Shown: positions 18,922 through 59,375 of the stretch, piece after piece
Position numbering within the stretch: position 1 is the first letter of the stretch
Layout: every line of letters starts with the position of its first letter
Sequence record: LR745206.1
Reading direction: 5' to 3' (one strand)
DNA: 64,000 nt
Position numbers and translations under genes: made by a program
Notes under the pieces: generated by a model
What the model was told of the DNA's origin: nothing
What the model saw: the letters and a program-made list of their open reading frames with translations, nothing else
The model's database searches: none

Positions 18922-19526
18922 TATATTCCATACAAGATGGAGACAAAATAAAAATACTACCATTTATAGATAAAAACAACAAGGTAACTTGGGGTAAGCA
19001 ATATGATATTGTTGTGACCGATGGTGGTCCTGTTTATGATGATAAGGGATATTTAAAGAAAATGTACTGGAATGTACGTAATCAAAGTGATGGTTATAAT
19101 AAAAATAATAATATAGCAACAAGAACTATGTTCCATGTTTATATTGGTGGTGAATCGGTTTTGATAGCTGTTGGTAGAAAGATATTGGATATAGTATCAG
19201 AAAATAAAACCTTATTTGATATAAGGAGTAATGATCATTTATTTATAGTTAAGGAACTTGTAACAGTTCCTAATGGTATGAAACTACCAAGTTATGATAA
19301 AACACATATTATAACCAGTGAATGGGATGCCCCAGTAACAGATATAGATTCTAAAGAAGAGTGGTTAGAATATTTAAATAATAATCAACCGGATATAGAA
19401 TCTTATGTTGATAGATATTCAATATCTAAAAACAGAGAGAATTTAATAAAATTATTTGGATCGGATTTGTTGAGTGAGATAATACAAAAAGAAAGAAATG
19501 AAAAATTAGAGGAAATACTAAAATAA
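18918..19526 (+). CDS. Hypothetical protein, weak gp32-like ssDNA-binding resemblance
   Basis: KILPF, VGRKI, LFD, PSYDK spaced as in T4 gp32-type SSBs; weak. Confidence 0.35.
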   Translation: MIYSIQDGDKIKILPFIDKNNKVTWGKQYDIVVTDGGPVYDDKGYLKKMYWNVRNQSDGYNKNNNIATRTMFHVYIGGESVLIAVGRKILDIVSENKTLFDIRSNDHLFIVKELVTVPNGMKLPSYDKTHIITSEWDAPVTDIDSKEEWLEYLNNNQPDIESYVDRYSISKNRENLIKLFGSDLLSEIIQKERNEKLEEILK

Positions 19527-26523: not shown

Positions 26524-26586
26524 ATGAAGAATATAAGATTAAATGATGATAGATTTTTATTAACTAACTGCAAAGCAGATTGGTAA
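26524..26586 (+). CDS. Putative attenuator leader peptide (Asn/Asp) MKNIRLNDDRFLLTNCKADW
   Basis: 3 Asn + 3 Asp in 20 aa directly upstream of a terminator and AspRS. Confidence 0.7.
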   Translation: MKNIRLNDDRFLLTNCKADW

Positions 26587-26611
26587 TAGAAAGTTATTAT
26601 CTAAATCTTGA

Positions 26612-26642
26612 AACCCAGTTAGTAACTAACTGGGTTTTTTTT
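26612..26642 (+). terminator. Attenuator terminator before AspRS
   Basis: AACCCAGTTAG-TAA-CTAACTGGGTT followed by T-tract. Confidence 0.85.
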
Positions 26643-26669
26643 ATGCAAAAAATTAAAAAAATAGAAATT

Positions 26670-27944
26670 ATGAAACGAACAAATGTAAATGAATTAGGAA
26701 ACTTTATTAATGAGAGAGTATTGGTAAAGGGTTGGGTGTCTCAATTTAGAGAGCTCAAAAAAATGTCTTTCCTAATATTAAGAGAAAGAACAGGGTATTG
26801 TCAAATAATAATACCAAAAGAAATATCACAATCTATTTCACCAGAATCGGTTGTTGAAATTATAGGTATTGTGAAAAAAGAAGAGCAATCTAGATATGGT
26901 GGATATGAAATAGTAGCTGAGTCCATTAATGTTGTATCAAATGCTCAACTATTACCATTTCCTATCAATAGGGAAGAAGGTATACCACAATTTAATGTTT
27001 TGAATAATTATAGACCTTTGACTTTGAGAAAAGAAAAAGAAAGATGTATATTTAAAATACAATCTGAGATTATATGGGCATATCGTGAGTATTTAAGATC
27101 ACAAGGATTTACAGAGATACAGTCAACAAAATTATCATCTGCTGGATTAGAAGGTGGATCTGAAATGTTTGAAATAGAGTATTTTGGTGAGAAAATGTAT
27201 TTAACACAAAGTCCACAATTCTACAAACAAATGATGGTTGGTGTTTATGAGAGAGTATTTGAAGTTGGTAAAGTCTATCGAGCAGAGGGATCAAATAGCA
27301 ATAGACATTTAACAGAGTTTGTTGGATTTGAATTTGAAATGGGATTCATAGAATCTGTTGAGGAGGTTATGCAAATGGAAGAGAATGTATTTGAGTATAT
27401 TTTCAACCATCTAAAATCTTTTTGTGTAAAAGAATTAGAATATTTTGGTATTAATTTAGAATTCAATCCAATACCAAGAATAACGTATCAAGAATCATTA
27501 GAGATTATTAAAAATTCTGGATTAAACTATGAGAAGATAGGGTTAAATGCTGAAGCAGAAAAAATAATTGGTGAGTATGTCTTAGAACATATGAAATCTG
27601 AATTCGTTTTTATAACAAAATATCCTTTATCAGAAAGACCATTCTATGCAATGCCATCTATTGAAGAGGGATGTTCTGAAACATTTGAACTATTATATAA
27701 AGGTATTGAGGTAACATCTGGTGGTCAAAGAATACACAATTATGAAGAATTGGTTAAATCAATTGAATCAAAGGGTTTGAATCCTGAGAATTTTGAAAGT
27801 TATTTGATGGCTTTTAAATATGGTATGCCAACACATGGAGGTATGGGTATAGGTTTAGAAAGAATACTAAAACAGATGCTTAATTTGAATTCTGTTGAAG
27901 AAGCATCACTAATTCCACGAACAAAAGAAAAAAATATACATTAA
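26670..27944 (+). CDS. aspS: Aspartyl-tRNA synthetase, archaeal/eukaryote-like type (possibly non-discriminating)
   Basis: OB-fold N-terminus, LTQSPQFYKQ, YRAEGS..RHLTEF, EVTSGGQRIH, GMPTHGGMGIGLER; start ATG 26670. Confidence 0.88.
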   Translation: MKRTNVNELGNFINERVLVKGWVSQFRELKKMSFLILRERTGYCQIIIPKEISQSISPESVVEIIGIVKKEEQSRYGGYEIVAESINVVSNAQLLPFPINREEGIPQFNVLNNYRPLTLRKEKERCIFKIQSEIIWAYREYLRSQGFTEIQSTKLSSAGLEGGSEMFEIEYFGEKMYLTQSPQFYKQMMVGVYERVFEVGKVYRAEGSNSNRHLTEFVGFEFEMGFIESVEEVMQMEENVFEYIFNHLKSFCVKELEYFGINLEFNPIPRITYQESLEIIKNSGLNYEKIGLNAEAEKIIGEYVLEHMKSEFVFITKYPLSERPFYAMPSIEEGCSETFELLYKGIEVTSGGQRIHNYEELVKSIESKGLNPENFESYLMAFKYGMPTHGGMGIGLERILKQMLNLNSVEEASLIPRTKEKNIH

Positions 27945-31698: not shown

Positions 31699-32133
31699 AT
31701 GGATAAGATAAACAAAATACAAGCATATCATTCCTTTACAGTTATGCCAAAAGATTGTAATTTCAATAAACGAAAGAACAGTGATCTTAATGATACATTA
31801 TTTGGTGGTAAGTTAATGTATGAGATGGACTATGCCGGTGCTAAAATAGCAAGAAGAGCTACTTATGGTATAGATATCGATATGATAGTTACCGCATCAA
31901 CTGATAGAATTAATTTTGAAAAACCAGCTTTTATTGGTGATTTAATAACTATGGAAGCTACTATAAAAGCTTTTGGTAGATCATCTATACAAATAAGGAT
32001 AAAGGTTAGACGAGAGGATTTAAAGGGTGATGTAGAACAAATTTGCTCAGCTAATATGACATTTGTTACTATAAAGGATGGTAAACCGATACAACATGGA
32101 TTATCTTTTGATAAATTAAATTTGGAGAATTAA
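31699..32133 (+). CDS. Acyl-CoA thioesterase (hotdog fold)
   Basis: VMPKDCN..TLFGGKLM, VTASTDRINFEKPAFIGD, GRSS, MTFVTI. Confidence 0.88.
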   Translation: MDKINKIQAYHSFTVMPKDCNFNKRKNSDLNDTLFGGKLMYEMDYAGAKIARRATYGIDIDMIVTASTDRINFEKPAFIGDLITMEATIKAFGRSSIQIRIKVRREDLKGDVEQICSANMTFVTIKDGKPIQHGLSFDKLNLEN

Positions 32134-32265: not shown

Positions 32266-32379
32266 ATTTTATAAATAAATTAAAATAAATTAGGTAGATA
32301 TAAAACTTTTATCTATATTTGTATAAAATAATAACAAAAACGAAAAAAGGGACAATTCCTTTTTAATATATAAGAAATA

Positions 32380-32475
32380 ATGACAACAAATAGTACACAT
32401 AAGAATTTTAGTAAATCGCATAAATGGTTTAGCAACCAATCGTTCGGTACTGAAAGTGTATTGTCATTAAATTAA
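32380..32475 (+). CDS. Putative attenuator leader peptide (His/Phe/Trp) MTTNSTHKNFSKSHKWFSNQSFGTESVLSLN
   Basis: 2 His, 3 Phe, 1 Trp; followed by a terminator and His/Phe/Trp tRNAs. Confidence 0.75.
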   Translation: MTTNSTHKNFSKSHKWFSNQSFGTESVLSLN

Positions 32476-32508
32476 TGTAGAAGTTAAATTAATAAACAAC
32501 AATATTTC

Positions 32509-32538
32509 AATCCGAACTCAAAAGTTCGGATTTTTTTT
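32509..32538 (+). terminator. Attenuator terminator, His/Phe/Trp tRNA block
   Basis: AATCCGAAC-TCAAAA-GTTCGGATT plus T-tract. Confidence 0.85.
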
Positions 32539-32552
32539 GTTTAAAAATATAT

Positions 32553-32627
32553 GGTGTGTGAAGGGAAAATGGTTGACCCGTCACTCTGTGAAAGTGAAGA
32601 TAGCGGGATCGTTACCCGTCATACACC
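32553..32627 (+). tRNA. tRNA-His (GTG)
   Basis: TCACT-CT-GTG-AA-AGTGA; encoded G-1 and C73; T-loop ATCGTTA. Confidence 0.85.
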
Positions 32628-32634
32628 CAAATAA

Positions 32635-32707
32635 GGAACCTAAGCTAATCAGGTGAAAGCACTGGACTGAAAATCCAGGGAGCCCGGATCGTTACCGGGA
32701 GGTTCCA
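32635..32707 (+). tRNA. tRNA-Phe (GAA)
   Basis: CTGGA-CT-GAA-AA-TCCAG; acceptor GGAACCT/AGGTTCC. Confidence 0.88.
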
Positions 32708-32714
32708 CAAACAT

Positions 32715-32788
32715 GGTGAATGTAGCTCAATTGGGAGAGCGTCTGGTTGTGAACCAGAAGGTAGTCGGATCAAAACCGACCTTTCACA
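32715..32788 (+). tRNA. tRNA-His (GTG), atypical
   Basis: TCTGG-TT-GTG-AA-CCAGA; T-loop ATCAAAA, A at position 73. Confidence 0.75.
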
Positions 32789-32794
32789 CAAAAT

Positions 32795-32866
32795 GGAGGC
32801 TTAGCTGAGACGGTTTAGCGTTGGTGTGAAGTACCAAAGAGGTCGGTTCGATTCCGGCAGTCTCCA
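32795..32866 (+). tRNA. tRNA-Phe (GAA)
   Basis: TTGGT-GT-GAA-GT-ACCAA; canonical T arm. Confidence 0.8.
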
Positions 32867-32881
32867 CAAAATAACTAACAC

Positions 32882-32953
32882 GCGGATGAGCGTAGGTTTA
32901 GTCGGCAGGATTCCAACCCCTCGCCCGTTAGAGTTCGAATCTCTACATCCGCG
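32882..32953 (+). tRNA. Degenerate tRNA-like gene (CCA/Trp or TCC/Gly register)
   Basis: Perfect acceptor GCGGATG/CATCCGC and T arm TAGAG-TTCGAAT-CTCTA; D and anticodon stems poorly paired. Confidence 0.45.
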
Positions 32954-32959
32954 CAAATA

Positions 32960-33027
32960 ACAAGTAGTGACTAAGAGGGTTACTTCGATTTTAACGACAA
33001 ACAATACTCTCTTTATTTTTCTCTTGT
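32960..33027 (+). other. Hairpin element homologous to the flanks of the permuted tRNA-Cys
   Basis: Shares CAAG-TAGT...GAG...GTTACTTCGA.T...CGAC...AATAC..CTC with 59031-59158; ACAAG/CTTGT closing pair. Confidence 0.5.
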
Positions 33028-33032
33028 TAAAC

Positions 33033-33103
33033 ACGGGTATGGTGAAATGGTATCATTACGGTCTCCAAAACCGCAGTTCTGAGTTCGAATCTTGGTACCC
33101 GTG
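33033..33103 (+). tRNA. tRNA-Trp (CCA)
   Basis: ACGGT-CT-CCA-AA-ACCGC; G73. Confidence 0.88.
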
Positions 33104-33135
33104 CAAATTATTAAAAATTGAAAAAGGAAGAAATT

Positions 33136-33165
33136 ATGAAAACTAAATTAAAATATAAACGATAG
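33136..33165 (+). CDS. Putative leader peptide (Lys) MKTKLKYKR
   Basis: 4 AAA Lys codons in 9; same GAAGAAATTATGAAAACTA 5' context as the leader at 33630; followed by four tRNA-Lys. Confidence 0.7.
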   Translation: MKTKLKYKR

Positions 33166-33195
33166 GGTTAGTAACCAATTGAAAGTTACTAACCC
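33165..33195 (+). promoter_or_regulatory. 11-bp hairpin starting at the Lys leader stop codon
   Basis: GGGTTAGTAAC-CAATTGAAA-GTTACTAACCC; no long T-tract. Confidence 0.7.
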
Positions 33196-33208
33196 ATTTA
33201 GAAAAAAT

Positions 33209-33281
33209 GCGTTCGTAGCTCAATTGGTAGAGCTTCCGGCTTTTAACCGGAAGGTTGTGGGTTCGATTCCCTCCGGGCGTA
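33209..33281 (+). tRNA. tRNA-Lys (TTT)
   Basis: TCCGG-CT-TTT-AA-CCGGA. Confidence 0.88.
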
Positions 33282-33292
33282 CTAGTAAATAT

Positions 33293-33378
33293 CCGTCCGT
33301 GGGTGAATGGCTGAAACCACCAGACTTTTAATCTGACGAGAGAGATCTCCATTGTAGGTTCGAATCCTACCGGGCGGA
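33293..33378 (+). tRNA. tRNA-Lys (TTT), long variable arm
   Basis: CCAGA-CT-TTT-AA-TCTGA; extended variable region. Confidence 0.75.
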
Positions 33379-33382
33379 CAAG

Positions 33383-33465
33383 GCACCTGTCGCTTAGCGG
33401 CTATAGCAACTGGCTTTTAACCAGTCGAGTTTTCTCAATCGTGGGTTCGAGTCCCACCAGGTGCA
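33383..33465 (+). tRNA. tRNA-Lys (TTT), long variable arm
   Basis: ACTGG-CT-TTT-AA-CCAGT; variable CGAGTTTTCTCAATC. Confidence 0.8.
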
Positions 33466-33471
33466 CAAAAT

Positions 33472-33557
33472 GACTCCGTTCCCGTAGTTGGCCGAACGGT
33501 CCAGACTCTTAATCTGGCGACGAAAGTCCACCGTGGGTTCGAATCCCACCGGGGTCA
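33472..33557 (+). tRNA. tRNA-Lys (CTT), long variable arm
   Basis: CCAGA-CT-CTT-AA-TCTGG; variable GAC-GAAA-GTC hairpin. Confidence 0.8.
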
Positions 33558-33629
33558 CAAGAATAAAAGTTAAAAAATTAGGAATTGACAAAAACAAACA
33601 TTACATTTGTAATATATAAAGAAGAAATT

Positions 33630-33704
33630 ATGAAAACTATTAACAACACATCGAAAAGTTCTAGTCGCTCATCAAGTATGAGTGAGATTCGATTGTATTC
33701 GTAA
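33630..33704 (+). CDS. Putative attenuator leader peptide (Ser/Arg) MKTINNTSKSSSRSSSMSEIRLYS
   Basis: 9 Ser + 2 Arg in 24 aa; own TACATTTG promoter; terminator then Arg/Ser tRNAs. Confidence 0.82.
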   Translation: MKTINNTSKSSSRSSSMSEIRLYS

Positions 33705-33726
33705 TAGTCAAGTATAGATATTTATG

Positions 33727-33757
33727 AAACCTCGAATCTAACGATTTGAGGTTTTTT
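33727..33757 (+). terminator. Attenuator terminator, Ser/Arg tRNA block
   Basis: AAACCTCGAATC-TAAC-GATTTGAGGTTT plus T-tract. Confidence 0.85.
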
Positions 33758-33767
33758 GTTTTAAAAT

Positions 33768-33839
33768 GGTTCCATCGTTCAACGGATAGGACACTCGGCT
33801 ACGAACCGAGAAATTGGGGTTCGAATCCCTATGGAATCA
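33768..33839 (+). tRNA. tRNA-Arg (ACG)
   Basis: CTCGG-CT-ACG-AA-CCGAG. Confidence 0.9.
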
Positions 33840-33844
33840 CAAAT

Positions 33845-33931
33845 GGAAGAGTAATTAAGCTGGCGCTTGACCTAGTCTTGAAAACTAGTGGTACTGAAAG
33901 GTATGGGGATCGATACCTCACTCTTCCGCCA
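33845..33931 (+). tRNA. tRNA-Ser (TGA)
   Basis: CTAGT-CT-TGA-AA-ACTAG; long variable arm, G73, encoded CCA. Confidence 0.85.
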
Positions 33932-33935
33932 AATT

Positions 33936-34022
33936 GGAAAAATAAGAGCAGTTGGTCTAAGCTCGGCGGTTTTGAAAACCGTAGGCCCTAGTGGTGTGTG
34001 AGTTCGAGTCTCACTTTTTCCG
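33936..34022 (+). tRNA. tRNA-Ser (TGA)
   Basis: GCGGT-TT-TGA-AA-ACCGT; long variable arm, G73. Confidence 0.85.
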
Positions 34023-34031
34023 CAAAAATTT

Positions 34032-34118
34032 GGAGAGCAATCTAATCTGGTGATTAGGGCCGCCTGCTAAGCGTGTCGCACCTTCGGGTGTGGGGTTCAA
34101 TTCCTCTGTTCTCCGCCA
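34032..34118 (+). tRNA. tRNA-Ser (GCT)
   Basis: CGC-CT-GCT-AA-GCG; variable GCACC-TTCG-GGTGT; encoded CCA. Confidence 0.8.
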
Positions 34119-34121
34119 AAT

Positions 34122-34205
34122 GGAAGGCAATCTAACTTGGTAGTTAGCCACGCTTGGAAAGCGTCGGGCACCTTCGGGTGTGGGTTTCGATTACTCTGTC
34201 TTCCG
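34122..34205 (+). tRNA. tRNA-Ser (GGA)
   Basis: ACGC-TT-GGA-AA-GCGT; same variable arm as the preceding gene. Confidence 0.8.
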
Positions 34206-34210
34206 CAAAT

Positions 34211-34291
34211 GCCTCTGTATCGTCCTCGTCTTCGAAACGAGAGTAGCGTAACGGATAATGAAAAATGTAGGTTCGAATCCTACCAGGGGTA
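34211..34291 (+). tRNA. Rearranged tRNA-Arg (TCG)-like gene: no D arm before the anticodon, D-arm-like hairpin after it
   Basis: GCCTCTG/CAGGGGT acceptor, CTCGT-CT-TCG-AA-ACGAG, CGT-AACGGATA-ATG, GTAGG-TTCGAAT-CCTAC. Confidence 0.6.
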
Positions 34292-35084: not shown

Positions 35085-35129
35085 ATGAGAGCTTTACATA
35101 CATACAAAATTACGATTGACTTGGGTTAA
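35085..35129 (+). CDS. Putative attenuator leader peptide MRALHTYKITIDLG (His)
   Basis: Single His codon; 3' end complementary to the terminator 5' arm; upstream of HisRS operon. Confidence 0.55.
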   Translation: MRALHTYKITIDLG

Positions 35130-35154
35130 CCCAGCTGTATTTTATATGTATATA

Positions 35155-35185
35155 GCCCAGTCAATCTTTTGACTGGGTTTTTTTA
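35155..35185 (+). terminator. Attenuator terminator before HisRS operon
   Basis: GCCCAGTCAA-TCTTT-TTGACTGGGT plus T-tract. Confidence 0.85.
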
Positions 35186-35207
35186 TGCAAAAAAATAAAG
35201 TAAAGTT

Positions 35208-35411
35208 ATGAAAACAAAAGATGATAGCTGGTACGAGCAAAAAGTTGAAAGTATCAGAAAGAGGAAAAGAAAACTCCATCTTATCCAAGAGCCAAAGGTT
35301 AGAAAGAGAATTAAGGCGGATTTAAAACGTGAGCAAAGAGGGGCTAAAAGATCTTCTAAAAACTCATTAAAGAAATGGATGGAAAACGAAATAAATAAAT
35401 TAAACGATTAA
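35208..35411 (+). CDS. Small basic helical protein
   Basis: 67 aa Lys/Arg-rich ORF. Confidence 0.6.
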   Translation: MKTKDDSWYEQKVESIRKRKRKLHLIQEPKVRKRIKADLKREQRGAKRSSKNSLKKWMENEINKLND

Positions 35412-35424
35412 AAAAATTATAAAA

Positions 35425-36060
35425 ATGGAAATTAAAATTGATAGTACTTATAAAGGAACAAGAATCCTTTTTGCGGAAACAGCTAAGAGTAAACGTGTTT
35501 TACTAAATGATATGATTGAAATACTTGAATCTTATGGATATCAAGAAATAATGATACCAATCATACAAAAACAAGAAACTTTCGCTTCAAAGGTGGGTGA
35601 TGAAAATCAAAACATGATGTATAACTTTAAAGATAGAGGTAATCGTGATTTATGTTTATCACCAGAGTACACAGCAATTGTTCAACAATTAGCCTCTGAT
35701 AGAATGAAGTTTGATAAAGATGTTAAAATGTTCTACATAGGAGAATGTTTTAGAGGAGAAAATACACAAGCTGGAAGATGGAGACAATTCACACAATTTG
35801 GTGTTGAAGTCTTAAATCCATCTAAAGACTACTCTGATGAAATGATAGAAATTGCTACTAAACTAATTGAATTAGTTACAAAAAATTATGAATTAAACAC
35901 AGACGCAACAAGAGGTCTTGACTACTACAATGGTGGAAAGGGATTTGAAATTGCTTGTCCTGAGTTGGGAGCTGCTAAACAAATTTGTGGGGGAGGTTCT
36001 TATGAAGGAGGTATTGGTTTTGCCGTTGGTGTGGACAGATTACTATTATGCAACAGATAA
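35425..36060 (+). CDS. hisS: Miniature histidyl-tRNA synthetase (catalytic core only)
   Basis: YKGTR, LCLSPEYTA, FRGENTQAGRWRQFTQFGVE, RGLDYY, GGGSY, GFAVGVDR; ends with no anticodon-binding domain. Confidence 0.85.
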   Translation: MEIKIDSTYKGTRILFAETAKSKRVLLNDMIEILESYGYQEIMIPIIQKQETFASKVGDENQNMMYNFKDRGNRDLCLSPEYTAIVQQLASDRMKFDKDVKMFYIGECFRGENTQAGRWRQFTQFGVEVLNPSKDYSDEMIEIATKLIELVTKNYELNTDATRGLDYYNGGKGFEIACPELGAAKQICGGGSYEGGIGFAVGVDRLLLCNR

Positions 36061-54824: not shown

Positions 54825-54869
54825 AAAGGGAGACAACCTTTTTAATATATACACGTATAATAAAGACAT

Positions 54870-54941
54870 CGCGGGGTAGAGCAGTGGCAGCTCGCAAGGC
54901 TCATAACCTTGAGGTCGTTGGTTCGAATCCAGCCCCCGCTA
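54870..54941 (+). tRNA. tRNA-fMet (CAT), initiator type
   Basis: CGCGGGG 5' end with unpaired C1, CAAGG-CT-CAT-AA-CCTTG; no leader or terminator upstream. Confidence 0.85.
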
Positions 54942-55028
54942 CTAAAAAATATTAAAATAAATTAGGTAGATTAGAAAAAACTACTTATATTTGTAAAAGA
55001 ATTAATAAACAAGATAATAAATAAACAA

Positions 55029-55115
55029 ATGAACACAATTACTAACATAGCGTCTTACGAATCTTATTATGAAGAGGGTAACCTAGTCAGACGAAATAAC
55101 TATGTCGTAATGTAA
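55029..55115 (+). CDS. Putative attenuator leader peptide (Tyr/Glu) MNTITNIASYESYYEEGNLVRRNNYVVM
   Basis: YESYYEE core (4 Tyr, 3 Glu in total); terminator then Tyr/Glu tRNAs. Confidence 0.82.
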   Translation: MNTITNIASYESYYEEGNLVRRNNYVVM

Positions 55116-55139
55116 GTAATTATATAAACGAATATTTAT

Positions 55140-55173
55140 ACCCAGTCTGACAAATGTTAGACTGGGTTTTTTT
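55140..55173 (+). terminator. Attenuator terminator, Tyr/Glu tRNA block
   Basis: ACCCAGTCTGAC-AAAT-GTTAGACTGGGT plus T-tract. Confidence 0.85.
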
Positions 55174-55187
55174 ATGTCAAAAAATTC

Positions 55188-55255
55188 GGGATGAATTATG
55201 GTGATAGCCGGGTCTGTAAAACCCTAGCAGGTGAGTTCGAGTCTCACACATCCCA
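55188..55255 (+). tRNA. tRNA-Tyr (GTA), atypical short form
   Basis: GGGT-CT-GTA-AA-ACCC; truncated D arm, short variable loop. Confidence 0.65.
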
Positions 55256-55266
55256 CTAAAACAAAT

Positions 55267-55338
55267 GGTCCTATCGTCTAAAGGTTAGGATAACAGACTT
55301 TCAATCTGTTGATACGGGTTCGAGCCCCGTTAGGACTA
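55267..55338 (+). tRNA. tRNA-Glu (TTC)
   Basis: ACAGA-CT-TTC-AA-TCTGT. Confidence 0.88.
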
Positions 55339-55343
55339 CAAAT

Positions 55344-55415
55344 GCTCTATTCGTCTAGTGGCAAGGACATCACCCTCTCAAGGTGAAGACGCGGGTTCGA
55401 CTCCCGTATAGAGTA
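55344..55415 (+). tRNA. tRNA-Glu (CTC)
   Basis: TCACC-CT-CTC-AA-GGTGA. Confidence 0.88.
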
Positions 55416-55426
55416 CAAAATTAAAT

Positions 55427-55498
55427 GCTCCGTTCGACAAGCGGTTAAGTCGTTGCCCTTTCAAGGCAAAGTCACGGGTTCGAATCCCGTACGGAGTA
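55427..55498 (+). tRNA. tRNA-Glu (TTC)
   Basis: TTGCC-CT-TTC-AA-GGCAA. Confidence 0.88.
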
Positions 55499-55523
55499 CA
55501 AACAGACATCAACGTAATGTCTG

Positions 55524-55647
55524 GGTGATGTAGAGCAATTGGTAGCTCATCTGCTAGTTAAATGATGGAATAATCATAATCCTGAAGCTATTATAAAATA
55601 GGCGACACGGTTGGTTCTTGGTGTAGGTTCGAGTCCTATCATCACTA
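55524..55647 (+). ncRNA. tRNA-like RNA with a large insertion replacing the anticodon arm
   Basis: Acceptor GGTGATG/CATCACT, D arm GAGC-AATTGGTA-GCTC, T arm GTAGG-TTCGAGT-CCTAT; about 70 nt insert with small hairpins. Confidence 0.6.
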
Positions 55648-55653
55648 ATACCT

Positions 55654-55736
55654 GGGATGTTATACCGTAGGGGTAGCGGGACAGACTGTAAATCTGTTAT
55701 CTTCGGATTCGGGTGGTTCGACTCCATCACGTCCCA
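55654..55736 (+). tRNA. tRNA-Tyr (GTA)
   Basis: ACAGA-CT-GTA-AA-TCTGT; long variable arm. Confidence 0.85.
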
Positions 55737-55745
55737 CAAAAATAT

Positions 55746-55817
55746 GGTCCATTCGTCTAATGGTTAGGACGCTAGGTTTTCAACCTAGAAATACGGGTTC
55801 GATCCCCGTATGGACTA
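55746..55817 (+). tRNA. tRNA-Glu (TTC)
   Basis: CTAGG-TT-TTC-AA-CCTAG. Confidence 0.88.
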
Positions 55818-55822
55818 CAAAT

Positions 55823-55906
55823 GGGGATATAGAGCGTAATTGGTAGCGTCCCGGGCTGTAAACTCGGTGTCTTTTGATCTTGTAGGTTCGAGTCCTGCTA
55901 GCCCCA
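55823..55906 (+). tRNA. tRNA-Tyr (GTA)
   Basis: CCGGG-CT-GTA-AA-CTCGG; long variable region. Confidence 0.82.
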
Positions 55907-56080
55907 CAAAAAGAAATAATATAATATATTTGGTTTATTTGGTTTATTGAAATATTATATTTATATTTGTAAAAGAATCGTAATCCCAAGTAACCCCTTG
56001 GTCGATTTTTTAACAAATTAAAAAAGATTAAAAGGGAAGGTAAAACTTTTTATATATACATACATATAATAGGAACGAAA

Positions 56081-56164
56081 ATGAAAAATTTAAATAACAT
56101 ATCAATAGCAGTAATCGGGAACGGCGCGGGAGCGATACGTGAGTGGCTGAGTTATGGTATTTAA
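56081..56164 (+). CDS. Putative attenuator leader peptide (Ile/Gly/Ala) MKNLNNISIAVIGNGAGAIREWLSYGI
   Basis: 5 Ile (3 ATA), 4 Gly, 3 Ala; terminator then Ile/Gly/Ala tRNAs, GlyRS and AlaRS. Confidence 0.82.
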   Translation: MKNLNNISIAVIGNGAGAIREWLSYGI

Positions 56165-56183
56165 TTAAATTAAAATATTTCAA

Positions 56184-56215
56184 AAACCCAGTCACGAAAA
56201 TGACTGGGTTTTTTT
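56184..56215 (+). terminator. Attenuator terminator, Ile/Gly/Ala block
   Basis: AAACCCAGTCA-CGAAAA-TGACTGGGTTT plus T-tract. Confidence 0.85.
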
Positions 56216-56227
56216 GTTTTTAAAAAC

Positions 56228-56301
56228 TGGTGAGTAGCTTAGATGGTAAAAGCATCTGTCTTATATACAGAAGATAATGGGATCGTTACCCATCTCACCA
56301 A
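56228..56301 (+). tRNA. tRNA-Ile (TAT)
   Basis: TCTGT-CT-TAT-AT-ACAGA; T-loop ATCGTTA. Confidence 0.8.
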
Positions 56302-56305
56302 CAAC

Positions 56306-56376
56306 GCGAGATGTAGCTTAATGATAAAGCGTCTGCCTTCCAAGCAGAAGACGGAGTTTGATTCTCACATTTCGCT
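56306..56376 (+). tRNA. tRNA-Gly (TCC), atypical T arm
   Basis: TCTGC-CT-TCC-AA-GCAGA; U73. Confidence 0.72.
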
Positions 56377-56381
56377 CAAAT

Positions 56382-56455
56382 AGTCCCTTAGCACAATTGG
56401 TTAGTGCACCTCGCTCATAACGAGAAGGTTATCGGTTCGAATCCGGTAGGGACTA
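56382..56455 (+). tRNA. tRNA (CAT), probably Ile2 (lysidine type)
   Basis: CTCG-CT-CAT-AA-CGAG; C4-G69 and C5-G68 pairs as in TilS substrates; elongator Met not excluded. Confidence 0.7.
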
Positions 56456-56501
56456 CAAAATGAGAAAACATTAAAACCATCTCACCAGGATGTAAAATAC
56501 C

Positions 56502-56573
56502 GCAGTAATGGTGTTAATGATAGCACATGAGACTTCCAATCTCAAGGTGTCGGTTCGAGTCCGATTTACTGCT
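56502..56573 (+). tRNA. tRNA-Gly (TCC)
   Basis: TGAGA-CT-TCC-AA-TCTCA; U73. Confidence 0.85.
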
Positions 56574-56634
56574 CAAGTATTTTAATATATATTCCAATCC
56601 AATTTATGGTTGGAAGATAAAATTAGAATTTATT

Positions 56635-57072
56635 ATGATTTGTAGAATTTGTGAAATTGATAAAGTAGAAGAAGATTTTCATTATCAAACAAAAAAGAAA
56701 GATAAGAGGAAAAAGTATTGTAAAGAATGTGCTAAGGGATATAGGAAGAAGTATTATGAAGCGAATAGAGAAAAATCTATCGAGTATTCCAAAAATACCA
56801 ATAAAAGTTTTAAGATAAAACTACAACAGTATATATGGGATTATCTAACAATTAATAATTGTATAATATGTGGTGAAAATGATCCAATTGTATTAGAATT
56901 TGACCATAGAGATTCGAGTGAGAAGTATATGGGTGTTTGTAATATGGTTAATACTAGACATTCGTTGAAAAAAATAATGAAAGAAATTGAAAAGTGTGAT
57001 GTTTTGTGTAGTAATTGTCATAAAAGAAAAACGGCTATTCAGTTTGATTGGTATAGTAAAATTATAAAATAA
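56635..57072 (+). CDS. HNH endonuclease with N-terminal Zn-ribbon
   Basis: CRIC..CKEC, CIIC..LEFDH..LCSNCH; start ATG 56635. Confidence 0.85.
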   Translation: MICRICEIDKVEEDFHYQTKKKDKRKKYCKECAKGYRKKYYEANREKSIEYSKNTNKSFKIKLQQYIWDYLTINNCIICGENDPIVLEFDHRDSSEKYMGVCNMVNTRHSLKKIMKEIEKCDVLCSNCHKRKTAIQFDWYSKIIK

Positions 57073-57079
57073 AAAATAT

Positions 57080-57155
57080 GGGGGCACATGTTCCAAGGCT
57101 TTGGCGAGTTTGACTTGCAATCAGACTGAGGTGGATTCGATTTCCACTGTCTCCA
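57080..57155 (+). tRNA. tRNA-Ala (TGC)
   Basis: TTTGA-CT-TGC-AA-TCAGA; G3.U70 pair. Confidence 0.8.
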
Positions 57156-57171
57156 CAAAAATTAAAAAGAA

Positions 57172-57912
57172 ATGGAAACATTATATAACATAAATAGTTT
57201 AGTAATCTGGGAAGAAAAGGATCTTAGGATTAGAAAGTTCATAGAGGATACTATGAAAGAGGAAATTAAAACAATATTACTCTCTCAGAATCCAGCTTGG
57301 AAATTCTATCAGATTGAAGCTCCTTGTCTTATACCAAGAGATTTGGTTAATGAGAATTATACCAATGAAGATATTTGGGTACAAGAAACAAAAGATGATG
57401 AAGTTGAATTGGTATTAAAACCTGAAACAACACCAAGTTCTTATGTATATGCTCAACACTTGTTAAATACAAATAGATGTCTACCACCACTTGTTGTTTG
57501 GCAAACATCTAAATCTTTTAGAAGAGAACAAGACCAAGTGATGAAGAATATGAGATTGAAAGAGTTTTATCAACAAGAGTTTCAATGTGTTTATTCAGCA
57601 AGTACACTGAATGATTATCAAGAAAATGTTCTTGAACCAATCAGAAAAATGTTGGAAGATATAATCGCTCTACCAACAAGGATAGTTGAGAGTGATAGAT
57701 TACCTTCTTATAGCCTAAGAACAATGGATATAGAAGTTTATAATGATGATAAATGGATGGAGATTTGTTCAATATCAAAAAGAACCGATTTTCCACAAAA
57801 AGCAGTATTTACTGTTAAGAACAAAGTTATCGAGACTGATTTATTGGTACTTGAAATAGCATTGGGTGTTGATAGAGTATTGTATAATTATATGAAACGA
57901 ATAAATAAATAA
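57172..57912 (+). CDS. Miniature glycyl-tRNA synthetase-like class II catalytic core
   Basis: LKPETT, motif 2 KSFRRE..MRLKEFYQQEFQ, WMEICS, motif 3 LGVDR; ends with no anticodon-binding domain. Confidence 0.75.
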   Translation: METLYNINSLVIWEEKDLRIRKFIEDTMKEEIKTILLSQNPAWKFYQIEAPCLIPRDLVNENYTNEDIWVQETKDDEVELVLKPETTPSSYVYAQHLLNTNRCLPPLVVWQTSKSFRREQDQVMKNMRLKEFYQQEFQCVYSASTLNDYQENVLEPIRKMLEDIIALPTRIVESDRLPSYSLRTMDIEVYNDDKWMEICSISKRTDFPQKAVFTVKNKVIETDLLVLEIALGVDRVLYNYMKRINK

Positions 57913-57929
57913 AAATAAAAAATAAAGAT

Positions 57930-58804
57930 ATGAAAAGGCTGGACGCATTTTAGTCACAGAAGAATATAAATCTTACTGTGACGTTAATAAAATTAAATTT
58001 AAAGTAGAAGAAAGTGTTAAATCTTATGATGATACGACATTATTTTGTCCATCAGGGATGCAACAATTCAAATCTAATTTCAAGGACGAGAATTATAAAG
58101 GAACAATATCCAATATTCAATCTTGTTTGAGATTGAATGATATAGATGAAATAGGTGATGGAACACACCTACTATATTTTAATATGATTGGATTCTTCTC
58201 ATTTAGAGAGTGGACTGTTCCACAAACAATTGATTATTGGATGGAATTCCTTAACTTAATAGGAATTAAACCTGATTATGTTACAATACACCCAACTAAA
58301 CCAGAATGGAGTGAGTGGTATAAAAAATATGAAGTTGAAGTAAGGTTTGATGAAGAGTGTAAATGGACAGATGGTGATATTGGTGGATATTGTACCGAAT
58401 TTTATAAAGATGATATAGAAATAGGTAATATTGTTAATCCACTTGGTACCTGTATAGATGTCGGATTCGGCTTAGAAAGATTGAAAATGGTTTTAGACAA
58501 CCAAATAGTTAGTAAAGAAGATACTCTAAAAGAAAGTATTATGAAAATAATAGAGAGTGGATTCAGACCAGGAAATAATAAACAAGGATATATTTTAAGA
58601 AAACTTCTTAGATTATGTCACCAAAATAAAATAGAAATAGAACATCCGTTTTATATGGATGAAGTAAAAAGACAGGAGAAGATATTAGAGAAGTGGGGTA
58701 AGTTAAAAAATAAACACAATGATAAATCAAAGGAATGGTGGTGGGACACACATGGTATTGATTTAGATTTTATAAAAGAAATTGAAAAAAATGAAAATAT
58801 TTAA
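57930..58804 (+). CDS. alaS: Miniature alanyl-tRNA synthetase (N-terminal catalytic domain), start uncertain
   Basis: YDDTTLFCPSGMQQFK, QSCLR..D, H..YFNMIG, EIGNIV, IDVGFGLERL, GYILRKLLR; the conserved motif lies upstream of the track start 58058. Confidence 0.8.
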
Positions 58805-58946
58805 AAATATAAAAGATGGTGAATTATATATCTTGGTTGAATTAAAACCAGGGATATACACAGCTATCCCAATAAATAGCGGTGATAAACCGATTAGTAA
58901 TTGTAATATGATTGATTTCGTACCAACAATTATAAACCGAAATTAA
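58791..58946 (+). CDS. Small hypothetical protein (51 aa)
   Basis: MKIFKNIKDGELYILVE...NRN, translated by hand. Confidence 0.45.
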   Translation: MKIFKNIKDGELYILVELKPGIYTAIPINSGDKPISNCNMIDFVPTIINRN

Positions 58947-58957
58947 TTTCGGTTAAT

Positions 58958-59030
58958 GCGAGAATAGCTCAGTTGGTAGAGCGCCACCTTGCCAAGGTGG
59001 AGGTCGCGGGTTCGAGCCCCGTTTCTCGCT
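58958..59030 (+). tRNA. tRNA-Gly (GCC)
   Basis: CCACC-TT-GCC-AA-GGTGG; canonical cloverleaf. Confidence 0.92.
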
Positions 59031-59045
59031 CAAGATAGTAGTAAT

Positions 59046-59157
59046 GAGAAGTGTTACTTCGACTGCAATTCGACTAGTCCAGGTTCGAATCCTGGCACCG
59101 GCTCAAATAAATAATGTCGGTGTGGTGTAATGGTAGCACAGTAATAACACACTTCTC
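59046..59157 (+). tRNA. Circularly permuted tRNA-Cys (GCA) gene candidate
   Basis: 3' half (59059-59103) precedes 5' half (59116-59141); acceptor GTCGGTG/CACCGGC, U73, flanks GAGAAGTGT/ACACTTCTC. Confidence 0.7.
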
Positions 59158-59175
59158 AAATTTTCTCTATCTAAT

Positions 59176-59249
59176 GGGGGATTAGCTCAGTTGGCTAGAG
59201 CGCCTGCCTTGCACGCAGGAGGCCATCGGTTCGAATCCGATATCCTCCA
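59176..59249 (+). tRNA. tRNA-Ala (TGC)
   Basis: CCTGC-CT-TGC-AC-GCAGG; G3.U70. Confidence 0.92.
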
Positions 59250-59375
59250 CAAAATATTAGGATATGTGGAAAATATTCTTATATTTGTATAAATAATTTA
59301 TAAACTATCATTTTTCTTTGTCAAAAGGAGAATAAAAAATTTCAAAGAGATTTGAAAAAAAAGAAAAATGTAGTT

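Follow-up and report, generated by a model that had tools for sequence, protein, structure and literature searches.

Ribosome-mediated transcription attenuation is the established mode of control of the trp, his, leu, thr, ilvGMEDA, and pheA operons of Proteobacteria (PMC1183508). A short leader ORF with clustered regulatory codons is followed by an antiterminator strand and by an intrinsic terminator ahead of the regulated genes, and a stalled ribosome favors read-through. Some leaders respond to several amino acids, such as those of thr (Thr/Ile) and ilv (Ile/Leu/Val), and the pheM leader peptide ahead of E. coli pheST appears to place a phenylalanyl-tRNA synthetase under the same type of control. 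T-box riboswitches (RF00230) also switch a terminator and an antiterminator ahead of translation-related genes, but they bind uncharged tRNA directly, need no translation, and possess a conserved Stem I and T-box sequence. For tRNA genes, conditional expression is known for the trn operon of Anabaena sp. PCC 7120, which is repressed by TrcR and activated under translational stress (PMC8421152, PMC10272220). Phage-encoded tRNA arrays are thought to keep translation going during infection, by compensating for codon usage or by counteracting host defense (PMC10264068, PMC11464382).

Here, we analyzed a 64,000-nucleotide stretch (the window) of LR745206.1, a 634-kb genome of an uncultured phage predicted to infect Bacteroidetes. 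In this genome, short ORFs composed of codons read by the downstream tRNAs, together with a transcription terminator, precede blocks of tRNA genes. To our knowledge, leader-peptide attenuation has been described only for protein-coding genes, and in a full-text literature search that did not cover most subscription journals we found no description of such control for tRNA genes.

Results

A Tyr/Glu-rich leader ORF and an intrinsic terminator precede a Tyr/Glu tRNA array

The initial annotation proposed a Tyr/Glu leader-peptide attenuator at positions 55029 to 55906, and our analysis confirmed the underlying observations. The units of the window described below are located on the plus strand. 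A 28-codon ORF (55029-55115) encodes MNTITNIASYESYYEEGNLVRRNNYVVM, and its codons 10 to 16 (55056-55076; YESYYEE) read TAC GAA TCT TAT TAT GAA GAG, six of which are read by the downstream tRNA-Tyr(GTA), tRNA-Glu(TTC), and tRNA-Glu(CTC). The ORF is followed by a strong intrinsic terminator (55140-55174) consisting of a 12-bp stem with a 4-nt loop (55140-55167, -19.6 kcal/mol) and a run of seven T residues. It ends 13 nt before the first tRNA-like gene, so that the array can only be reached by read-through. The sequence GTCAGAC (55086-55092) is complementary to GTCTGAC (55145-55151) within the 5' arm of the terminator. Upstream of the ORF, a promoter-like element is present at positions 54962 to 54995 (TTAGG-N-TATATTTGTA). 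It includes TAnnTTTG, which appears to correspond to the -7 box of Bacteroidetes-type promoters and would put the inferred transcription start near 55000. The composite motif occurs 4 times in the window against 0.13 expected, and three of the four copies are located ahead of tRNA leaders. TAnnTTTG lies within 160 nt upstream of 22 of the 30 leaders examined, against 14% of random windows.

The array begins with a degenerate tRNA-like gene with a GTA (Tyr) anticodon loop (55188-55255), a reduced D arm, no long variable arm, and a cloverleaf-like fold. Note that this gene is subthreshold in Rfam (21.6 bits against a cutoff of 29) and is not called by ARAGORN, although relatives possess a normal tRNA-Tyr(GTA) in this first position (L024 4345 and L039 7168; L numbers denote the loci examined). 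It is followed by tRNA-Glu(TTC) (55267-55339), tRNA-Glu(CTC) (55344-55416), tRNA-Glu(TTC) (55427-55499), tRNA-Tyr(GTA) (55654-55737), tRNA-Glu(TTC) (55746-55818), and tRNA-Tyr(GTA) (55823-55907). The initial annotation had missed an eighth tRNA-like gene (55524-55647; Rfam tRNA, 40.9 bits), which carries about 62 nt in place of the anticodon arm. Neither the Rfam alignment nor the predicted fold allowed assignment of its anticodon, and the ARAGORN call of an intron-containing Ser(act) tRNA is not reliable. Consequently, the claim that no amino acid other than Tyr and Glu is represented is not contradicted, but it cannot be strictly verified.

Taken alone, this unit, designated unit D, is only suggestive. 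The probability of finding at least 6 Tyr/Glu in 7 consecutive codons of a 27-codon peptide with the composition of this phage is about 3e-4, and a perfect complement of at least 7 nt to the 5' arm within the leader was obtained in 246 of 20000 shuffles (p about 0.012). Over the whole peptide, 7 of 27 cognate codons correspond to p = 0.02-0.03. The unit becomes convincing only together with its sister units and those of relatives.

Sister units in the window

The window contains four sister units. Unit A (32290-32540) comprises a promoter motif (32290-32323), a leader (32380-32475; MTTNSTHKNFSKSHKWFSNQSFGTESVLSLN) with 2 His, 3 Phe, and 1 Trp codons, and a terminator (32508-32540), whose antiterminator partner CGTTCGGT has a z of -3.06. 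Its array (32554-33104) encodes tRNA-His, Phe, His, Phe, Trp(CCA, 32882-32954), and Trp(CCA). Unit C (33578-33761) comprises a promoter motif (33578-33611), a leader (33630-33704; MKTINNTSKSSSRSSSMSEIRLYS), and a terminator (33726-33761). Eleven of 23 codons of its leader are Ser or Arg codons (p = 2e-5), and each of the 11 has a cognate anticodon in the array (33768-34291), which contains Arg(ACG), two Ser(TGA), Ser(GCT), Ser(GGA), and a sixth tRNA (34211-34291) that looks like Arg(TCG), its anticodon having been read by eye. Unit E (55962-56220) comprises TATATTTGTA at 55962, a leader (56081-56164; MKNLNNISIAVIGNGAGAIREWLSYGI), and a terminator (56182-56220). It precedes a probable operon (56228-59250) with tRNA-Ile(TAT), Gly(TCC), Met/Ile2(CAT), Gly(TCC), an inserted ORF, tRNA-Ala(TGC) at 57082, GlyRS-like and AlaRS-like genes, tRNA-Gly(GCC), and tRNA-Ala(TGC). 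The extent of this operon is inferred; no strong plus-strand terminator lies between 56213 and 60176. In contrast, the internal unit B (33136-33197), located ahead of four tRNA-Lys genes (33209-33558; TTT x3, CTT), is atypical and does not fit the model. It consists of a mini-ORF (MKTKLKYKR, with four AAA codons) and a hairpin that lacks a T-run and overlaps the stop codon, and no antiterminator partner was found. We retain it only as a possible atypical internal unit. The gaps between terminator and first tRNA are about 7-14 nt, leaving no room for a promoter. Within the five units of the window, cognate amino acids are enriched (Fisher p = 2e-8), and the true pairing of leaders and arrays ranks 1 of 120.

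Intriguingly, the same design is found ahead of a synthetase gene. A leader (26524-26586; MKNIRLNDDRFLLTNCKADW) with 3 Asn and 3 Asp codons and a terminator (26610-26638) precede a gene for a non-discriminating AspRS (26670-27944; NF003483, 5e-142), and the leader segment TAACTAACTG repeats the loop and 3' arm of the terminator. Furthermore, a leader (MRALHTYKITIDLG) plus terminator (35085-35179) is located ahead of a HisRS-like gene (35425-36060), and the ortholog of this leader in L033 (MKHLHTYKIMIDWG) has two His codons.

Long ORFs of the window end in TAA 39 times, in TGA 5 times, and in TAG once, and nothing suggests that the leader ORFs are misread. The only Rfam matches at gathering score in the window are tRNA-clan models, i.e., 26 tRNA and one tRNA-Sec, the latter on a probable tRNA-Ser(GCT) at 34031-34115. 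No T-box or known leader family was detected at gathering score in the window or at E up to 10 in the region 54945-55190, where only far subthreshold hits over the terminator were obtained.

Leader codons correspond to the anticodons of the downstream tRNAs

Three further units are located outside the window in the same genome (L046), and relatives supply the rest of the 30 units examined, 26 of which, from the window and IMG/VR relatives, entered the statistics. In these 26 units, 224 of 680 leader codons are read by the downstream anticodons, whereas the mean is 84.8 (sd 16.7) with the tRNA sets of other unit families (z = 8.3); at the family level, 0 of 200000 permutations reached the observed score. 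Note that units from related phages are not statistically independent and that two of the 26 automatically detected units (L024 19203 and L031 15919) show no codon match and are probably false. The correspondence is frame specific: cognate triplets make up 33% in frame 0, against 15% and 10% in the other frames (97 and 67 triplets), and frame 0 is highest in 23 of 26 units, with cognate codons peaking in the middle of the ORF. It also extends to isoacceptors, as 122 of 159 codons match, against 96 expected from synonymous usage (z = 5.2). Specifically, L042 15886 uses CTA/TTG/CTT ahead of Leu(TAG, GAG, CAA), L042 14250 uses TTA ahead of Leu(TAA), and in L040 12249 the first 25 codons are all cognate to a 17-tRNA array.

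Orthologs of the unit D leader (L001 6959, L038 4110, L040 3911, L024 4188, and L042 1265) keep the Tyr/Glu-rich core but not its order. A natural experiment is provided by relatives with differently organized arrays: L002 and L039 have one leader with I, Y, G, E, and A codons ahead of one Glu/Tyr/Gly/Ile/Ala array, whereas the window, L001, L038, and L040 have two leaders (YE and IGA) ahead of two arrays. The units of the same genome outside the window are a Leu/Asn/Thr/Val/Ile/Arg/Met unit with 28 of 37 cognate codons, a Pro/Asp unit, and a Gln unit, and in LR756504 (L048) the leader core IAIVEIAVIGGAEEGV precedes Glu, Ala, Ile, Val, Gly, and Glu tRNAs.

The device looks clade limited, since more distant IMG/VR loci (L025, L027, L030, and L031; 45-55% identity) have tRNAs but no convincing units. 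Relatives of the unit A region (anchor 31699-32130; L033 to L037) carry no tRNAs at all. Of the cultured relatives found through the 246-aa synthetase-like protein, which included Xanthomonas, Caulobacter, and Brevundimonas jumbo phages, Sinorhizobium phage Phosso (61% identity) was inspected and has only one suppressor-like tRNA near the anchor and no such unit. A scan of a genome collection returned only three proteobacterial MAG contigs of the distant clade and gave no clue to the host.

Predicted antiterminators covary with terminator stems

In unit D, the predicted antiterminator (55086-55151) is closed by GUCAGAC (55086-55092) paired with GUCUGAC (55145-55151), with an inner hairpin spanning the stop codon. 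It is the minimum-energy fold (-17.2 kcal/mol) of the RNA left free by a ribosome stalled at 55056-55071, before the 3' arm is transcribed (duplex z = -2.65, p = 0.02). Its helix is only 7 bp, and the terminated fold is more stable by about 9 kcal/mol, so the switch must act kinetically, as in classical attenuators. In 23 of 26 units, a partner for the 5' arm of the terminator lies in the 3' third of the ORF with z below 0 (Fisher p = 6e-13, although the units are not all independent). Paired changes are visible: CCCGTC/GACGGG becomes CCTGTTC/GACAGG between L042 and L044, and CCCGAAC/GTTCGGG, CCCTCAG/CTGAGGG, and AATCTCA/TGGGATT occur in the Leu/Asn/Thr family.

Discussion

Every sequence-level feature of a leader-peptide attenuator is present in unit D, i.e., a promoter-like element, a short ORF with clustered cognate codons, a predicted antiterminator strand just 3' of those codons, and an intrinsic terminator ahead of the first tRNA. 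The evidence is entirely computational, without experimental support for translation, termination, or regulated read-through, but it supports the proposal of the initial annotation, and with a probability of roughly 0.85 the region belongs to a family of ribosome-mediated transcription attenuators that control tRNA arrays in a clade of huge phages predicted to infect Bacteroidetes. In the proposed mechanism, transcription starts near 55000 and enters the leader ORF. If charged tRNA-Tyr and tRNA-Glu are plentiful, the ribosome would run to the stop codon (55113-55115) and melt or occupy the RNA between 55098 and 55127, so that the terminator hairpin forms and RNA polymerase stops at the T-run. 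Note that, in this inferred geometry, a ribosome parked at the stop codon would not physically cover 55086-55092. If decoding of UAC/UAU/GAA/GAG is slow, the ribosome would stall at 55056-55076, the stretch 55086-55151 would fold into the antiterminator, and the array would be transcribed. The result would be negative feedback, by which the phage tops up exactly those tRNAs whose codons are read slowly, whether because of a codon-usage mismatch with the host, dilution or degradation of host tRNA, or tRNA-targeting defense, although making more tRNA would not help if the amino acid rather than the tRNA were limiting.

One alternative, which we consider unlikely, is that the element responds to translation but serves a narrower or different purpose, such as an alarm for tRNA-cleaving host defenses, or that the read-out is RNA stability, processing, or Rho-dependent termination. 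Phage tRNAs are proposed to replace host tRNAs cut by defense systems (PMC10264068, PMC11464382), the stalling logic would respond to such cleavage, and the hairpin of unit B without a T-run hints that not every unit works by intrinsic termination. However, the arrays together cover almost every amino acid, in groupings such as Tyr+Glu, His+Phe+Trp, Ser+Arg, Pro+Asp, and Gln that do not seem to follow the target sets of known anticodon nucleases; the RloC and colicin E5-type triggers suggested in the initial annotation are therefore not supported specifically, and general sensing of charged-tRNA supply is the simpler reading. Moreover, canonical GC-rich hairpins followed by T5-8 are present in nearly all units, and the presence of the device ahead of an aaRS gene fits supply control better than a defense alarm.

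Direct sensing of uncharged tRNA in the manner of a T-box, without translation of the ORF, is even less likely. The triplets do match the anticodons of the downstream tRNAs, and T-box leaders likewise seem to end in a terminator/antiterminator switch. Yet the leaders run about 110-140 nt from ATG to T-run, shorter than T-boxes, no T-box was detected in the Rfam searches, and cognate triplets are frame specific within ATG-to-stop ORFs, which keep start and stop codons in all relatives while the order of residues shuffles. Up to 25 consecutive in-frame cognate codons for 8 amino acids (L040 12249) cannot serve as a single specifier. Finally, a chance ORF next to a terminator that simply ends the upstream transcription unit (tRNA-Met 54870) or acts as a constitutive leaky insulator is strongly disfavored despite the modest statistics of unit D alone and the many short ORFs of AT-rich genomes, because the terminator lies downstream of a conserved promoter motif and 13 nt upstream of the array and the coincidence would have to recur in more than 25 units, with leader codons tracking array content and antiterminator strands tracking terminator stems.

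A broader reading, which we regard as likely but less secure than the one above, is that a whole clade of huge phages (LR745206, LR756504, and at least a dozen IMG/VR contigs with 27-50% GC) runs most of its tRNA complement, and some of its aminoacyl-tRNA synthetase genes, under codon-specific leader-peptide attenuators. LR745206 would have at least 8 such operons covering about 19 amino acids, each leader acting as a miniature test of decoding capacity written, down to isoacceptors, in the codons its array serves, and leaders would be rewritten whenever arrays gain, lose, fuse, or split tRNA genes. This would be the first case of tRNA genes controlled by ribosome-mediated attenuation and a virus-encoded homeostat for translation, in which sensor (the decoding speed of a codon) and output (the tRNA that reads it) close the shortest possible feedback loop. 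The leaders indicate which codons the phage treats as limiting and predict on-demand rather than constitutive expression, which bears on why phages carry tRNAs and on how autonomous these near-cellular genomes are, as it suggests that huge phages regulate their own tRNAs and synthetases in cis. In practical terms, leader composition predicts the identity of aberrant or undetected tRNA genes and operon boundaries in metagenomic phage genomes, and the compact, modular switches could serve as sensors of tRNA charging.

With respect to known systems, previous studies of phage tRNA clusters (PMC10264068, PMC11464382) concern the same cargo and address why phages carry tRNAs, but they do not appear to describe a feedback device that decides when each tRNA set is made. 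The Anabaena array is likewise a large accessory tRNA array expressed when translation is in trouble; there, a protein repressor provides one switch for 26 genes, and PMC8421152 makes no mention of a leader, attenuation, or a terminator, whereas the control proposed here is cis-acting, codon-specific, and split into many operons by amino acid. T-boxes share the function of sensing the charging state of a specific tRNA, but their conserved elements were not detected here, where the codons are read in frame. The pheST attenuator appears to control a component of the translation apparatus in response to charged-tRNA supply and has a direct analogue in the Asn/Asp-rich leader ahead of the non-discriminating AspRS gene, but the phage device is placed mainly ahead of tRNA arrays. 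Compared to the attenuators of amino acid biosynthetic operons, to whose Rfam leader families no sequence similarity was found, the phage-encoded leaders share the architecture and resemble the multi-amino-acid thr and ilv leaders, yet they encode up to 8 different amino acids with one codon per isoacceptor in the array, and the regulated genes are tRNA genes rather than enzymes, so that what is replenished is the tRNA rather than the amino acid.

Genomic context

Bases 310001-374000 of LR745206.1, an unannotated 634,780-bp "uncultured phage" genome, belong to one of the largest huge phages of Al-Shayeb et al. 2020, a study which predicts that its phages of more than 634 kb replicate in Bacteroidetes (PMC7162821, PMC9723777). 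The window has a G+C content of 30% and contains no N. ARAGORN identified 24 tRNA genes and Rfam 27, all of which are located on the + strand and organized in blocks. Between these blocks lie genes for translation functions, i.e., a non-discriminating AspRS, HisRS-, GlyRS-, and AlaRS-like fragments, and a Thg1-like gene.

The Tyr/Glu leader and its tRNA array

The initial annotation, which described a Tyr/Glu leader ahead of Tyr and Glu tRNAs, was confirmed. The ORF at 55029-55115 encodes MNTITNIASYESYYEEGNLVRRNNYVVM followed by a stop codon, and its codons 10 to 16 are TAC GAA TCT TAT TAT GAA GAG. A 12-bp G+C-rich hairpin (55140-55167) followed by T7 is the best terminator-like site in the region, and GTCAGAC (55086-55092) is the exact complement of GTCTGAC (55145-55151) in the 5' arm of this hairpin. 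The seven anticodons GTA, TTC, CTC, TTC, GTA, TTC, and GTA follow in the order given by the initial annotation. However, the first GTA "tRNA" (55188-55255) is a degenerate tRNA-like gene, scoring 21.6 bits against a cut-off of 29, and an eighth tRNA-like gene (55524-55647) had been overlooked. The latter carries about 62 nt in place of its anticodon arm, and its identity could not be assigned. A tRNA-like gene of this kind, with normal acceptor, D, and T arms but a long insert where the anticodon arm should be, is also present at 7125-7220 of L001, one of the related loci described below; these genes differ between close relatives. Taken by itself, the unit is only moderately improbable, with p of about 3e-4 for the YESYYEE cluster, p of about 0.012 for the 7-nt complement, and p = 0.02-0.03 for the whole peptide.

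The tRNA-Met(CAT) gene directly upstream (54870-54942) has no leader, and the same order of Met followed by a leader is kept in the related loci L001, L024, and L039. By eye, this tRNA has a C1xU72 mismatch, as initiator tRNAs do, which would fit the absence of a leader, since an initiator cannot be sensed by elongation stalling.

Sister units in the window

Inspection of the other tRNA blocks revealed the same design four more times, so that, with the Tyr/Glu unit designated D, five units (A to E) were distinguished. In unit A, the leader ORF at 32380-32475 encodes MTTNSTHKNFSKSHKWFSNQSFGTESVLSLN and precedes tRNAs for His, Phe, His, Phe, Trp, and Trp. In unit B, the ORF at 33136-33165 encodes MKTKLKYKR, with four AAA codons, ahead of four tRNA-Lys genes. 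This internal mini-ORF is atypical, as its TAG stop codon overlaps a hairpin that lacks a T-run (33136-33197 for the whole element), and it thus does not fit the standard attenuator model; its start context (GAAGAAATTATGAAAACTA) is shared with leader C. In unit C, the ORF at 33630-33704 encodes MKTINNTSKSSSRSSSMSEIRLYS and precedes Arg(ACG), two Ser(TGA), Ser(GCT), Ser(GGA), and a probable Arg(TCG); each Ser and Arg codon of this leader has a matching anticodon in the array. The array of unit D comprises three Tyr tRNAs (one degenerate), four Glu tRNAs, and the unassigned tRNA-like gene. In unit E, the ORF at 56081-56164 encodes MKNLNNISIAVIGNGAGAIREWLSYGI and precedes Ile(TAT), Gly, Met/Ile2(CAT), and Gly, with Ala and Gly tRNAs and the GlyRS- and AlaRS-like genes located further on. 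At 57931-58804, the conserved N-terminal motif of the AlaRS-like gene (...DDTTLFCPSGMQQFK) lies in a frame that is open back to about 57933 but has no ATG before 58058, whereas an ATG at 57931 is in another frame and meets TAG after seven codons; a non-ATG start, a frameshift, or a truncated gene are possible explanations. Protein-coding ORFs also occur inside tRNA arrays, namely, a Cys-rich 145-residue ORF without a Pfam hit in the window (56635-57072) and, in the related locus L039 (7597-8240), a GIY-YIG-like ORF as judged by eye, and they look like mobile endonuclease genes that split the arrays.

Cognate amino acids are enriched in all five leaders (Fisher p = 2e-8), and the true pairing of leaders and arrays is the best of all 120 possible pairings. 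The terminators end about 7-14 nt before the first tRNA, and the arrays can therefore be transcribed only by read-through. Units A, C, and D are preceded by a shared motif, TTAGG-N(14-26)-TAnnTTTGTA, which has 4 matches in the window against 0.13 expected and whose TAnnTTTG part probably represents the Bacteroidetes -7 promoter box. The spacer between TTAGG/TTTGG and TAnnTTTG (54962-54985 in the window, columns of about 25-50 in our alignment A1) contains an inverted repeat whose arms differ between relatives but stay complementary (for example, GGTGAAAT...ATTTCACC and GGAGATTT...AAATCTTC); it could be an overlapping terminator of the upstream unit or an operator. In addition, a conserved box, AAAGGGA-N6-CTTTTTAATATATA(AGAAATA), with a weak hairpin lies between the TAnnTTTG promoter and the ATG of several leaders and stands alone ahead of tRNA-Met 54870 (54826-54862, 32344-32375, and 56028-56070 in the window; 13650-13699 in L046, a further stretch of LR745206). 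This box could be a second promoter type or an initiation region.

Related units in other huge phages

Using three neighboring proteins as anchors, 44 loci of related huge phages were retrieved from IMG/VR (designated by L numbers), and further parts of LR745206 itself (L046) as well as a stretch of LR756504 (L048) were added. A blind script selected every hairpin plus T-run lying up to 220 nt before a tRNA and the longest ATG ORF ending up to 90 nt before that hairpin. It found 26 units in the first set and 4 more in the second. In L022, the ORF starting at 7296 encodes MFATSYSYCYYGSSSSSVSYGYESEEGSMGGKV ahead of Glu, Ser, Tyr, Gly, and Cys tRNAs, and in L020, the ORF starting at 9525 encodes MNNKVNILILGTEGTTEILEGIHWLPALCS ahead of Gly, Thr, Glu, Met, Ile, and Leu tRNAs. 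In L040, the ORF starting at 12249 encodes a peptide beginning with MRTMNLNITNLNLTMVVNNTLCIRT ahead of 17 tRNAs; its first 25 codons are all cognate, with CTA, TTG, CTC, and TTA matching Leu(TAG), (CAA), (AAG), and (TAA), and AGA matching Arg(TCT). In L042, the ORF starting at 15886 encodes MRNRNLNMNLLNLMETLDGILM ahead of Leu(TAG), Leu(GAG), and Leu(CAA), and in L048, the ORF starting at 18939 encodes a peptide containing IAIVEIAVIGGAEEGV ahead of Glu, Ala, Ile, Val, Gly, and Glu tRNAs. L046 features tandem attenuators in one operon (32703-34120, corresponding to LR745206 406703-408120): a Pro/Gln/Asp leader with its own promoter, starting at 32703 and beginning with MKTINVNIAPVNPQPQDQDP, precedes Pro, four Asp, Pro, and Pro tRNAs, and is followed by an internal Gln-only leader starting at 33638 (MTTTQQIQQQQINQTD and a stop codon), with a canonical terminator but no promoter, ahead of three tRNA-Gln genes.

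One natural experiment is especially informative. L002 and L039 have a single Glu/Tyr/Gly/Ile/Ala array behind a single leader that uses I, Y, G, E, and A, whereas in the window, L001, L038, and L040 the array is split in two, with one YE leader and one I/G/A leader.

Units were found in LR745206, with at least 8 arrays, in LR756504, and in the IMG/VR contigs L001, L002, L020, L022, L024, and L038 to L044, which span 27-50% G+C. They were not found in the more distant loci L025, L027, L030, and L031, nor in the stretch of the cultured Sinorhizobium phage Phosso around the anchor gene, and no cultured carrier is known from these searches. In the more distant clade (L013 to L023 and L045, with Phosso 171983-172058 in the latter; about 55-61% identity of the anchor protein), a tRNA with a CTA anticodon, an amber-suppressor type labeled "Pyl" by ARAGORN, sits just upstream of the synthetase-like gene.

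Correspondence between leader codons and downstream anticodons

Across units, 224 of 680 leader codons are read by the downstream anticodons, whereas with tRNA sets taken from other unit families the mean is 84.8 (sd 16.7, z = 8.3). With one representative per family, 0 of 200000 permutations reached the observed score. Two automatically called units (L024 19203 and L031 15919) show no match and are probably false positives, but they were kept in the tests. The signal is frame-specific, with 33% cognate triplets in frame 0 against 15% and 10% in the other two frames; frame 0 is highest in 23 of 26 units, and the signal peaks in the second and third fifths of the ORF. Among codons whose amino acid is served downstream, 122 of 159 are read by one of the anticodons actually present, while synonymous usage of phage genes predicts 96 (z = 5.2). 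The match therefore holds at the isoacceptor level and goes beyond amino acid composition.

Predicted antiterminator structures

For each unit, we asked whether the 5' arm of the terminator has a partner between codon 5 and the stem. The best duplex is stronger than in dinucleotide shuffles in 23 of 26 units (median z = -1.7; Fisher p = 6e-13, with the caveat that related units are not independent), and the partner lies in the last third of the ORF, just after the regulatory codons. The partners change together with the stems: between L042 and L044, CCCGTC/GACGGG becomes CCTGTTC/GACAGG, and in the Leu/Asn/Thr family three different solutions occur, i.e., CCCGAAC/GTTCGGG, CCCTCAG/CTGAGGG, and AATCTCA/TGGGATT, with the encoded C-terminal residues changing accordingly. 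That part of the ORF is therefore constrained as RNA, not as protein.

For unit D, the predicted fold of the RNA left free by a ribosome stalled with its A site at 55056-55071 is a 66-nt antiterminator (55086-55151, -17.2 kcal/mol), which forms before the 3' arm emerges and is closed by the 7-bp helix noted in the initial annotation. With a ribosome at the stop codon, or with no ribosome, only the terminator forms (about -20 kcal/mol). As the terminated state is the more stable overall (-26.1 against -17.2 kcal/mol), the choice must be kinetic, as in classical attenuators.

Leaders ahead of AspRS and HisRS-like genes

The same device stands directly ahead of the non-discriminating aspartate-tRNA(Asn) ligase gene (NF003483, 5e-142; 26524-27944 including the leader). 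Its leader ORF encodes MKNIRLNDDRFLLTNCKADW followed by a stop codon, with three Asn and three Asp codons, corresponding to the two tRNAs that this enzyme charges, and is followed by a terminator at 26610-26638; the leader segment TAACTAACTG repeats the loop and 3' arm of the terminator. It also stands ahead of the HisRS-like gene fragment (35085-36060 including the leader), where a promoter (TATATTTGTA), a leader (MRALHTYKITIDLG and a stop codon) with one His codon, and a terminator (35154-35179) are found. The ortholog in L033 (10826-10930; MKHLHTYKIMIDWG and a stop codon) has two His codons, and in the window an extra stretch of about 245 nt separates the terminator from the HisRS-like ORF.

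Discussion

The simplest account of the architecture and of the co-variation of leader with array and of antiterminator with terminator, as established by sequence and comparison, is classical ribosome-mediated attenuation, although translation of the ORFs, the position of the transcription start, the footprint geometry, and the sign of the regulation are inferred. In this account, slow decoding of the codons of the leader leads to an antiterminator, then to read-through, and then to more of exactly those tRNAs, whereas fast decoding leads to termination. The translation apparatus of this phage thus looks like a regulon of cis-acting sensors of charged tRNA. The trigger is likewise inferred; nuclease stress, as raised by the initial annotation, is possible but not indicated, and the arrays together cover nearly all amino acids in groupings that do not appear to match known nuclease specificities.

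Of the alternatives, a translation-dependent device with another read-out or purpose remains possible, if unlikely; the atypical hairpin of unit B hints that not every unit works by intrinsic termination. Direct, T-box-like sensing of tRNA is disfavored by the absence of any T-box signature in Rfam searches, by the frame specificity, and by leaders that carry codons for up to eight amino acids. A chance ORF beside an ordinary terminator cannot explain the co-variation.

We found no description of tRNA genes under leader-peptide control in full-text searches, although these did not extend to most subscription journals and prior art cannot be excluded. Among the huge-phage and jumbo-phage papers searched, including a 2026 review, none contains "leader peptide" or "transcription attenuation," and the paper that published this genome contains neither "leader" nor any word beginning with "attenuat" (PMC7162821). 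The best-studied inducible tRNA array, the trn operon of Anabaena, is controlled by a protein repressor (PMC10272220), and no leader or attenuation is mentioned in PMC8421152. The mechanism proposed here is that of the trp, his, thr, ilv, and pheA leaders, and the closest precedent for a translation component is pheM-pheST. Compared with these, as far as our searches could show, the target class (tRNA arrays), the carrier (phage), and the codon-by-codon leaders that track array content are new.
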